Origin: Leidyana gryllorum EB-2025a
Taxonomy: Eukaryota > Protista > Apicomplexa
Assembly (NCBI GenBank): GCA_048772705.1
Contig: JBLWGC010000051.1
Span: 1-64,000, forward strand
DNA length: 64,000 bases
Reading direction: 5' to 3'
This document shows, one piece after another, positions 9,798 through 12,451 of this stretch. The notes below the pieces were generated by a model, which made no database searches, had not been told where the DNA came from, and saw only the letters and a program-made list of their open reading frames with translations. The number at the start of each line of letters is the position of its first letter. Within the stretch, counting starts at the first letter, position 1. The position numbers and the translations under genes were made by a program.

Positions 9798-10902
9798 TTA
9801 GTTGTCATCTTCGTTTATCATTGCAGCTGCAGTAGGATTTGCCTTTGTAGACGACTGCACGGCTATCAACCCCCCCATCACCCCTTTCAGTTCTTCTTGA
9901 ATCTGCCGTAATTGAGCAGTTCGTTCTTCGTGCACTTTTCGGCGATTGTCTATTTCGGCGAAACCGATGCGAACCTGGTTGTGTGAGGCGGTGTCGTCGG
10001 CTGTACTGTCGGAGAGGTGTACTTACTTTCTCTGACTCTAAATGTATCTTTTCCTGGAGCACAGGTACTGATCGTCGTTGCAGCACTTCGTGAGCGGTTT
10101 GATCACATTGTTCAAGTCGTCTACGTTCTTCTCTGACACTTTCCAGCTCCGCCCGCAGGGCAGTTACATCGGCTTCCATTTGAGCATTGGCAGCCGCGGT
10201 CTGCTCATATACTTCAGCTAGAGTGATGAGGCCGTCCAGGTCTCGTACGAGCATCAGTGCATGATCAATGACATTCTCTTTCACCATGAACTCTATATGA
10301 CTGTCAGTATTGCCAGCCGCGGGCGGATTGGGGATAGCCGTTGTCTCCTCAGAGGAGCCCATATCTTGTCCAGCTGCTGCTGGAGCTGAGTTGACGCCTC
10401 CAAGCGTCCTGACGACGGCGCAGAAGGCATTGCGTATCAAGGTGGCGAGGGGTGTGGCATCAGTTCGCCAAATCTGTTGAGCCCGCAAGCCGACCTGGAT
10501 GAGGTATCTGTGGGCCGAGAGATGTATAGAGTCTTAAGAGTGGTATGGGTGTGATCATTGTTACCTATTGCTGAGTCCATTGTGCTGTTCGGGAGCTGCA
10601 TGACGTTGAACAAACGGTTGGGTGCCAGCGATTTTCGGGGCGTTCGGACAGGCGGATCCTCCGAGAACGTCCAGCATGTTCTGTTTGGTGGGGAGGTCCC
10701 CATACAGCTTAGGTACGGGGGGTGGTTTGAGGCGCACTGCTCGAGGCATACCGCCACCTCCACCATGGCGCACCCTGCCTGAACCAGAGCTTATGCTGCC
10801 AGTGCTCATCATGGAGTCCTTCTGGTGAAAGCTCCTCGACGAGGATTGAAAGCCTCCTCCCCCACTGTTGGTGCGTCCTCCGCCCCCTTGTTCAAACCTC
10901 AT
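9798..10902 (-). CDS. THO complex subunit 7 (THOC7/Mft1)-like coiled-coil protein
   Basis: Spliced product (introns about 10510-10564 and 9977-10026) contains LRAELESVREERRRLEQCDQTAHEVLQRRS...RRKVHEERTAQLRQIQEEL, resembling the THOC7 C-terminal coiled coil. Confidence 0.5.
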
Positions 10903-10952: not shown

Positions 10953-12451
10953 CTACATCCACAACTTTGAGGTACTGATATTAACAGACTCTGTCACAGA
11001 TTGTCCATCTTTCAATCCATTTTCCCAACAACTTACTCCAATTCTTCCCTTCTCGATACATTTTCAGCGCTTCAGCCGGAAGCTGAAGGTGATACATTGC
11101 GACGAAGGGGAGGGGATCATCCCAGGTGAAAAAGCCTTCCGTGCCGAAAAGTAAGAGTTTGGCCAGACGCTTGAGGTTGCGATCACCAAAGATTGCGTCA
11201 TAAATAACGTGGCCCAGCCAGTATACGTGCATTGACTTGTTGAGTGGGACGATCGGCCATTTTGGCACATCCAACGTTCGTTCTTGCACCAACTCCTCAT
11301 CATCCACAGAGGTGCGCAAAGACTTCTTGGTCGGATAGTACGCTTCCGACAGCCACGGGTGGTCTCTAAATAGACATATTGCCGTGTGACACCGTGGATT
11401 GCACTCAATTGGGAGCAACACCGTCTTGCCGTCCTCTTCCGTCATGATAAAGTCAAAACTGATGTGACCAGTGATCCGCAACGGAGCCACAAACTTTCTT
11501 GTGAACTCGAGAGCCTCTGGAACCATCACCTCCTCGTATTCCAGGAGAACGTCCTTGCTTGGAACACAGCAATAAGCCTTCACCTCGCCTTTCTGCACGA
11601 TACTGTATGTGGCCAACTCTCTCCCTTTGACGAACTCCTGCAGCACGAAAGGATCCCGTTCACCAATTCGCAAGTGCGCCATCGCAGCGCTAATTTCATC
11701 ACGACTCATCGAAGCGTCCAACACCACAAGGGCGCGTACGTCATCAGGTATCCAATTTGATCGCTTCAATACAAAGCGTTTGGTCGGTTGGTCGGTAAAC
11801 TTGAAGTCTAATACCTCCTCTTTGCTGCCGATAGGATACGTCGCCGGCACTCGGAGACCCAATTCTTTGCACTACATCAGCGATCATCCCAGTCCGGGCT
11901 ATCAGAGCCGTCACAATCCTTACCTTAGATATAAATGGCGCTTTCTGGTCCAAATCACGCACCAGATCCGCACCATAGAAGAAGGTTTCCACTCCCATAT
12001 CAGCCAGCACCGGAGCAACCAAAGCATCGTGATAGGAAGTTGCCACAGGACTGACCGGAATAAACAGTTTGATCTGTTCCTCCTTGCAAATGTTCGCGAG
12101 TGCCTGTGCGTAGCCCCTGTAATCCACAGTTGGATCAGGAACAAGTAGGAATCTAGCTACTGCCCCGCTGTATTTGGAAGCTATGTAGGACACGTGTGTG
12201 TCAAGCTCCACCATAATCACGCGATGGCCCCCTTTGTACATAGCTCGGGCAACATCCAGTGCCTTATTCATAGAACCCCCGTTAATCAGAACGGTTATTC
12301 CCTCCTTGCTCTCAGGGTCGGCCACATGGTTCGCCCAGAATGTGCGTCGTACCCATGCAATCAACAGGAGGAGCAACGACAGCGGGAGGCCCGCTGCGGT
12401 TGCGAGCAACACAGCAGCAGTCTTTACCGCGAGCTCACGCGATGGCTGCAT
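10953..12451 (-). CDS. mysC: ATP-grasp ligase of the mycosporine-glycine synthase (MysC) family
   Basis: Hydrophobic N-terminus then TVLINGGSMNKALDVARAMYKGGHRVIMVE, YAQALANICKEEQIKLFIPVSPVATSYHDA, LQEFVKGRE, GHISFDFI, PIECNPRCHTAI, FTWDDPLPF. Introns 11872-11923 and 10991-11036 give C-terminus WKSVNISTSKLWM*. Confidence 0.85.

Follow-up and report, generated by a model that had tools for sequence, protein, structure and literature searches.

A MysC-type ligase gene of apparent fungal/amoebozoan affinity and its unlinked mycosporine pathway partners in a gregarine-like apicomplexan

Among the systems closest to the locus considered here, mycosporine biosynthesis has been described in a cyanobacterium and in a fungus. 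In Anabaena variabilis, the ligase MysC (Ava_3856) phosphorylates the C3 hydroxyl group of 4-deoxygadusol, after which an amine attacks (PMC10666671). In Phaffia rhodozyma, gene deletions and expression in yeast have shown that the DDGS-OMT-ATPG cluster (DDGS, demethyl-4-deoxygadusol synthase) accounts for the synthesis of mycosporine-glutaminol (PMC10057719). The gene discussed here lies on the minus strand of a 64,000-nucleotide stretch of DNA (positions 1 to 64,000 of contig JBLWGC010000051.1, here C51; the whole stretch is called the window) and had originally been predicted to encode a MysC-type ATP-grasp ligase in an apparent apicomplexan. Apicomplexans are usually viewed as metabolically stripped parasites. 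Neither the MysC family nor its chemistry is new; the novelty is that a member of apparent fungal/amoebozoan affinity occurs in a host where none was expected. All three genes of the mycosporine pathway are present in the genome, where they are unlinked. That the gene discussed here codes for a working MysC-type ligase from the fungal/amoebozoan branch, acting at the third step of this complete three-gene pathway in a gregarine-like apicomplexan, is given a probability of roughly 0.78.

The ligase gene consists of three exons and its predicted product has about 466 residues; searches, fold prediction, and trees were run on the exon 1 and exon 2 pieces separately. The sole strong profile match is NCBIfam NF005315 (PRK06849), which aligns with exon 1 at model positions 5-122 (E = 1.2e-24) and, collinearly, with exon 2 at positions 125-369 of 389 (E = 6.7e-44), values that chance would not produce. 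NF005315, named 'hypothetical protein' in NCBIfam, is in effect the bacterial MysC model; its cut-off is exceeded by the operon homologues P0001 and P0045, which sit in operons of dehydroquinate synthase (DHQS)-like, methyltransferase, ATP-grasp, and D-Ala-D-Ala-ligase genes. The Pfam matches of the ligase (ATP-grasp_3 and PylC_N) are sub-threshold only, and Pfam is therefore unable to name the family. The ligase was compared with an alignment of 55 family members drawn from three clades; 34 columns of this alignment are at least 90% conserved, and the ligase matches 33 of them (the sole change being Pro to Ala), its retained residues including K, E, and the invariant E-C-N-P-R. Within the IECNPR motif, E, N, P, and R occur in 100% of the 55 members and are all found in the ligase. 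E-x-N-P-R-type motifs of ATP-grasp enzymes hold the Glu and Asn that bind Mg/ATP. AlphaFold2 modelled the exon-2 piece with a mean predicted local distance difference test score of 73.6 (~90 over residues 1-160), and a Foldseek comparison with the PDB returned as top matches exclusively ATP-grasp proteins (among them CPS1, VanA, LysX, PurK, and Ddl). A sequence search of the PDB with the same piece gave nothing relevant, no MysC structure being deposited. The fold modelled for the exon-2 piece is that of an ATP-grasp domain.

The motifs listed in the original prediction are all present in the exon translations, namely GGSMNKALDVARAMYKGGHRVIMVE, YAQALANICKEEQIKLFIPV, IECNPRCHTAI, FTWDDPLPF, and, after splicing, W-K-SVNISTSK. 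Together, NF005315, the mys-flanked bacterial relatives described below, the 33 retained residues, and the predicted fold bear out the proposed identity, and on the basis of its sequence the gene is assigned to the MysC family of ATP-grasp ligases. The protein begins with a hydrophobic leader (top 19-residue Kyte-Doolittle hydropathy window of 2.45 at residues 14-32), and an equivalent hydrophobic stretch is found in the aligned bacterial, fungal, and amoebozoan homologues. Because this N-terminal helix is conserved in bacterial and eukaryotic members, it probably anchors the ligase to a membrane.

When 1.84 billion representatives were searched exhaustively with HMMER, the best match came from the amoebozoan Planoprotostelium fungivorum (39-41% identity, the closest match being 41%), and the exon-2 piece is 36-41% identical to MysC homologues; a close apicomplexan homologue of the ligase was returned by neither protein search. 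For prokaryotes, one genome per species was scanned. Among the best 80 relatives, mostly from cyanobacteria, a DDGS/EVS-type cyclase was found within 7 kb in 68, MysB in 71, and MysD in 61, and most of the remaining relatives are cut by contig ends. Since mys genes stand beside nearly all of these bacterial relatives, there is no sizeable mys-unlinked subfamily near the ligase. The exon-2 trees contain three groups: bacterial MysC, a fungal/amoebozoan clade (Planoprotostelium and the ascomycetes Saitoella, Orbilia, Morchella, Kalaharituber, Xylariaceae, and Aspergillus), and an algal-type eukaryotic clade (Vitrella, the raphidophyte Fibrocapsa, the chytrid Rhizophlyctis, and the mollusc Batillaria; bootstrap 99). 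The exon-2 piece is found inside the fungal/amoebozoan clade with an ultrafast bootstrap of 100 and a value of 99 in the Shimodaira-Hasegawa-like approximate likelihood ratio test. The free exon-1 tree is poorly resolved and joins two long branches; when the exon-1 piece is constrained to the fungal/amoebozoan clade, the resulting tree beats the free one by 15.9 log-likelihood units. The phylogeny that had been proposed with cyanobacterial, fungal, and chromerid MysC thus keeps the ligase within the MysC family and points to its fungal/amoebozoan branch, neither cyanobacterial nor chromerid.

As regards origin only, the ligase could also have been inherited vertically from a photosynthetic ancestor of chromerids and apicomplexans, with no fungus-like or amoebozoan-like donor involved. 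The chromerid Vitrella brassicaformis, of all free-living organisms in the data set the one nearest to apicomplexans, possesses a family member (P0063), and trees can be misled by long branches. However, the exon-2 tree separates the ligase from the Vitrella/algal clade with a bootstrap of 100, forcing it into the Vitrella clade changes the likelihood by -26.7 log-likelihood units (approximately unbiased (AU) test, p = 0.032, for a group named after the tree had been seen), and the methyltransferase of the same genome is of the fungal cluster type. Vertical origin is hence considered improbable, and the DDGS tree does not decide between the two. The V. brassicaformis protein (558 amino acids) is itself a MysC-family protein of the algal-type clade, and a literature search found no paper discussing it.

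The pathway searches covered the whole genome (15.5 Mb in 237 contigs), in which the ligase gene is present as a single copy. In agreement with the original prediction, mysA and mysB lie outside the window, and the genome search it had proposed found one gene of each kind: a DDGS (MysA) as a stand-alone open reading frame on contig C104 and an O-methyltransferase on contig C216. The DDGS gene is the only DHQS-family gene in the genome, carries PF01761 and PF24621, and is 56-64% identical to named demethyl-4-deoxygadusol synthases from fungi, cyanobacteria, Planoprotostelium, and rotifers. On the aroB model it reaches 188 bits at a cut-off of 305 bits. In the DDGS tree, it falls inside the DDGS clade with a support of 100 against an outgroup of EVS-type MysA, the donor lineage not being resolved by this tree. 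EPSP synthase, a marker of the shikimate pathway, was not found in the genome search, and because the genome is without it, the DHQS-family gene on C104 is not taken to be a shikimate enzyme. This suggests that the shikimate pathway is missing from the genome though a DHQS-like cyclase has been kept. Downstream of DDGS on C104, at ~2-7 kb and on the same strand, a class I methyltransferase (Methyltransf_25/11) and a sugar transporter are encoded (L009:2311-3099, L009:4128-5801). The pathway as read here does not call for this methyltransferase. A Methyltransf_25 reading frame ~6 kb from DDGS was considered as MysB and rejected, as it belongs to a different family and two unrelated genes lie between.

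The methyltransferase on C216 is the only PF01596 gene in the genome and resembles catechol O-methyltransferase (COMT). It shows 25% identity to cyanobacterial MysB, and the idea that it might for this reason be an unrelated COMT was dropped on account of its 46-50% identity to the methyltransferases of the Aspergillus crustosus fusion and the Orbilia cluster. In Orbilia (P0067), the DDGS, methyltransferase, and ATP-grasp genes are adjacent in one cluster. In A. crustosus, P0057 is a methyltransferase-ATP-grasp fusion of 745 residues (L098:8001-10672) whose gene adjoins DDGS and is transcribed in the divergent direction, and a transketolase gene lies ~3 kb downstream of the fusion. Of the metagenomic relatives of the C216 methyltransferase, 37 have 9 kb or more of sequence, and in 34 of these a DDGS and/or ATP-grasp gene lies within 6 kb. 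In Planoprotostelium fungivorum, a PF01596 methyltransferase (L008:8802-9665) adjoins DDGS and the MysC-like gene is on another contig; tblastn at E 1e-3 detected no similarity between the COMT-type methyltransferase of the gregarine and the fungi and the one beside the Planoprotostelium DDGS.

Since an intact ligase gene and both upstream enzymes are encoded, the parasite lineage can probably make a fungal-type mycosporine sunscreen. Transketolase, the source of sedoheptulose 7-phosphate, is also present in the genome and would supply this precursor, which DDGS would cyclise to desmethyl-4-deoxygadusol and the COMT-type O-methyltransferase would convert to 4-deoxygadusol. From the characterised MysC and the Phaffia ATPG gene, we infer by analogy that the ligase would then transfer phosphate from ATP to the C3 enol hydroxyl of 4-deoxygadusol, and that the amino group of an amino acid would displace this phosphate. 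This would yield an enaminone chromophore, that is, a mono-substituted oxo-mycosporine absorbing near 310 nm. A second ligase of the MysD (D-Ala-D-Ala-ligase type, PF07478) or MysE-like kind was not found in the genome, and a mono-substituted mycosporine is therefore expected, as in fungi. The suggestion that the lineage may make mycosporine-like amino acids holds in so far as all three genes are there; the expected compound is mono-substituted and not di-substituted. Ligation of host-derived precursors, which had been offered as another option, is not needed because DDGS and the methyltransferase are both encoded. As a hypothesis, the mycosporine might protect environmental gametocysts or oocysts from ultraviolet light, desiccation, or oxidants.

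Several points weigh against a functional MysC-type ligase in a complete pathway. The ligase (C51), DDGS (C104), and methyltransferase (C216) are located on three contigs and hence unclustered, and the ligase is also unlinked from DDGS in its two nearest named relatives, Planoprotostelium and Saitoella. The nearest ligase homologue is merely 39-41% identical, and the terminal branch of the ligase is long (1.5-1.8 changes per site). The search patterns for the methyltransferase were partly built from a cluster methyltransferase and are biased toward that subfamily. Finally, the exon pieces sum to only ~237 bits on NF005315, whose cut-off is 406 bits. Planoprotostelium (322 bits) and Saitoella (235 bits) likewise stay below this value, and MysC of bacterial mys clusters reaches 449-499 bits; the cut-off is tuned to bacteria. 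Clustering of the DDGS, methyltransferase, and ligase genes is typical of the MysC family and not required.

The long branch and the lack of linkage, shared with Planoprotostelium and Saitoella, would also fit an active ATP-grasp ligase that derives from MysC and has changed its substrate. In that case, 4-deoxygadusol or a gadusol-like antioxidant would be the end product of DDGS and the methyltransferase, or the ligase would serve in an unrelated pathway. It is in line with such a change that the ligase has ELATYS and CNPRCH where most homologues have EYCTHS and CNPRTH. On the other hand, 33 of the 34 family-wide conserved residues are kept, a DDGS-unlinked ATP-grasp subfamily is absent among the bacterial relatives, and each of the three pathway genes has been retained in exactly one copy in a reduced parasite genome of 15.5 Mb. 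We consider a changed substrate unlikely and retain the MysC-type function of the ligase.

The gene model agrees with the two short spliceosomal introns originally proposed (Table 1). Both introns are canonical GT-AG, the reading frame is open through all three exons, and exon 1 aligns in translation with MysC homologues from the first Met onward. Intron 1 contains an in-frame TAG directly before exon 2. At the junction of exons 1 and 2, ...LDQKAPFISK/CKELGLRVP... is collinear with bacterial ...LDDKYRFIKTAESLGLPVP... with zero gap in the homologue alignment. The exon-3 peptide aligns with WSRINVSTSRVF of Planoprotostelium, WTRINASTGKVF of Saitoella, and W.RIDFNIGKLV of bacteria, and the C-terminal family motif W-x-R-I-[ND]-x-[ST]-[TI]-x-K is obtained solely from the spliced reading, the unspliced read-through tail having no match in the homologue alignment. 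Both introns are supported because the exon junctions align gap-free with homologues, and the predicted splicing model is in this way backed by homology. The neighbouring phosphatase gene, read by eye, has a GT-AG intron of similar size.

Table 1. Coordinates of the ligase gene and of its predicted pathway partners. Positions without a contig refer to the window; C, contig; L, locus.
Feature	Position	Strand	Description
Ligase gene, whole	12451..10953	minus	ATG at 12451-12449, TAG stop at 10955-10953
Exon 1	11924..12451	minus	176 codons, phase 0; start codon, hydrophobic leader, N-terminal pre-ATP-grasp domain
N-terminal hydrophobic segment, residues ~9-33	12353..12427	minus	Kyte-Doolittle; probable membrane anchor
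Intron 1	11872..11923	minus	52 nucleotides, GTAAGG...TAG
Exon 2	11037..11871	minus	278 codons + 1 nucleotide; ATP-grasp core, family-specific C-terminal region
IECNPR motif	11392..11409	minus	E, N, P, R invariant in family alignment
Intron 2	10991..11036	minus	46 nucleotides, GTAAGT...ACAG, phase 1
Exon 3	10953..10990	minus	last 12 residues (K)SVNISTSKLWM + TAG stop
DDGS (MysA)	C104:751086-752462 (L001:853-2229)	minus in L001	stand-alone open reading frame
COMT-type O-methyltransferase	C216:167678-168472 (L002:1264-2058)	plus in L002	PF01596

The host appears to be an apicomplexan close to gregarines, as had been supposed, judging from one importin search and a PAN-domain protein on the ligase contig. 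The nearest named relative of the importin is from Gregarina sp. (43%), followed by Cardiosporidium, Babesia, Theileria, and Cyclospora. The upstream neighbour of the ligase, proposed to be PP6, is a PP2A-family phosphatase (Pfam Metallophos). The reading frame at window positions 9805-10488 (minus strand), thought to be THOC7-like, matched nothing in Pfam at E 0.01. The GC (guanine plus cytosine) content of the ligase gene is 0.51-0.53, that of the window 0.528. A correlation of codon usage with neighbouring genes was set aside, as the pieces are too short and the reference set includes the larger genes themselves. The DDGS gene lies on a contig of 1.27 Mb, and its locus is syntenic with a 3.1 kb Logan contig from a related organism (run ERR10900105), with 82-88% protein identity for DDGS and 73% for the adjacent integrin-beta-VWA-like gene. 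This synteny indicates that DDGS has been inherited within the lineage and, together with the conservation of the protein, suggests that the pathway is under selection.

Given that the closest relatives of the ligase are non-apicomplexan and that the protein searches brought up no close apicomplexan homologue, the locus might be suspected of being misassembled or of stemming from contaminating DNA of a fungus, an amoebozoan, or a bacterium. Yet the other genes of the ligase contig are apicomplexan, the introns are of local size and type, the GC content equals that of the window, no database protein shares more than 41% identity with the ligase, and DDGS sits in a large contig with synteny in a related organism. 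Contamination, against which the original prediction had likewise argued, is thus very unlikely, its probability being close to negligible, and the ligase gene is resident in the parasite nuclear genome. The long branch of the ligase might instead mark the remnant of an ancient transfer, a gene that is decaying or silent and yields no working enzyme. We hold this to be highly improbable, because the frame is open over three exons with both splice sites canonical, the conserved residues are kept, and the partner DDGS is conserved and syntenic in the related organism.

Wall proteins and lipids supply most of the current explanation of how exposed apicomplexan cysts resist sunlight, drying, and oxidants. 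Full-text literature searches yielded no publication that connects gregarines or any other apicomplexan parasite with mycosporines or deoxygadusol, in keeping with the earlier statement that the pathway is not known to have been described there. If the proposed function is true, a small-molecule protectant would be added to the picture of cyst resistance, and this would be the first small-molecule sunscreen pathway in Apicomplexa, with a non-photosynthetic parasite joining the known mycosporine producers. It would also provide an easily testable marker, namely absorbance at 310 nm or detection by liquid chromatography-mass spectrometry. A wider scenario is that the gregarine lineage took the three fungal-type genes from another eukaryote, that the genes were scattered and at least the ligase gained introns, and that the parasite makes its own mycosporine for cysts outside the host. 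We put this forward tentatively, at somewhat less than even odds; it would amount to a multi-gene transfer from eukaryote to eukaryote into a parasite. Genes of apparent fungal/amoebozoan affinity are now scattered over the parasite genome, one of them with introns.

Compared with known systems, the gregarine ligase shares the ATP-grasp superfamily fold with MysD, which belongs to a different family (PF07478). MysD is the D-Ala-D-Ala-ligase-type ATP-grasp enzyme that adds a second amino acid. Cyanobacterial MysC (Ava_3856 of Anabaena variabilis) is collinear with the gregarine ligase over the full length, at 36-40% identity and with the same conserved residues, and the same chemistry would be expected by analogy (PMC10666671). 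Unlike cyanobacterial MysC, the gregarine ligase scores below the NF005315 cut-off, falls into a separate clade, and has spliceosomal introns and no operon. The methyltransferase partner is 25% identical to MysB, and as no MysD/MysE partner was found in the gregarine genome, shinorine or another di-substituted product would not be expected. The MysC homologues of algae and other eukaryotes (Vitrella, Fibrocapsa, Rhizophlyctis, and Batillaria) belong to the same family and have a comparable domain layout, but form a distinct clade (bootstrap 99), and joining the gregarine ligase to them is disfavoured (AU p = 0.032). The fungal ligases (Phaffia ATPG, Orbilia P0067, and Aspergillus crustosus P0057) differ in that their genes are in one cluster, whereas the gregarine genes are on three contigs of an apicomplexan parasite, and the crown fungal members are just ~28-31% identical to the gregarine ligase. 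The fungal ligases are nevertheless placed in the same exon-2 clade as the gregarine ligase with a bootstrap of 100, the place of Phaffia ATPG, whose own sequence is outside the data set, being an assumption based on how the genes of its cluster are ordered. Their length is similar, they possess the hydrophobic leader, IECNPR, and the C-terminal W-x-R-I-N-x-S-T-x-K tail, and their clusters contain the same two partner enzymes as the gregarine genome, including a COMT-type methyltransferase.

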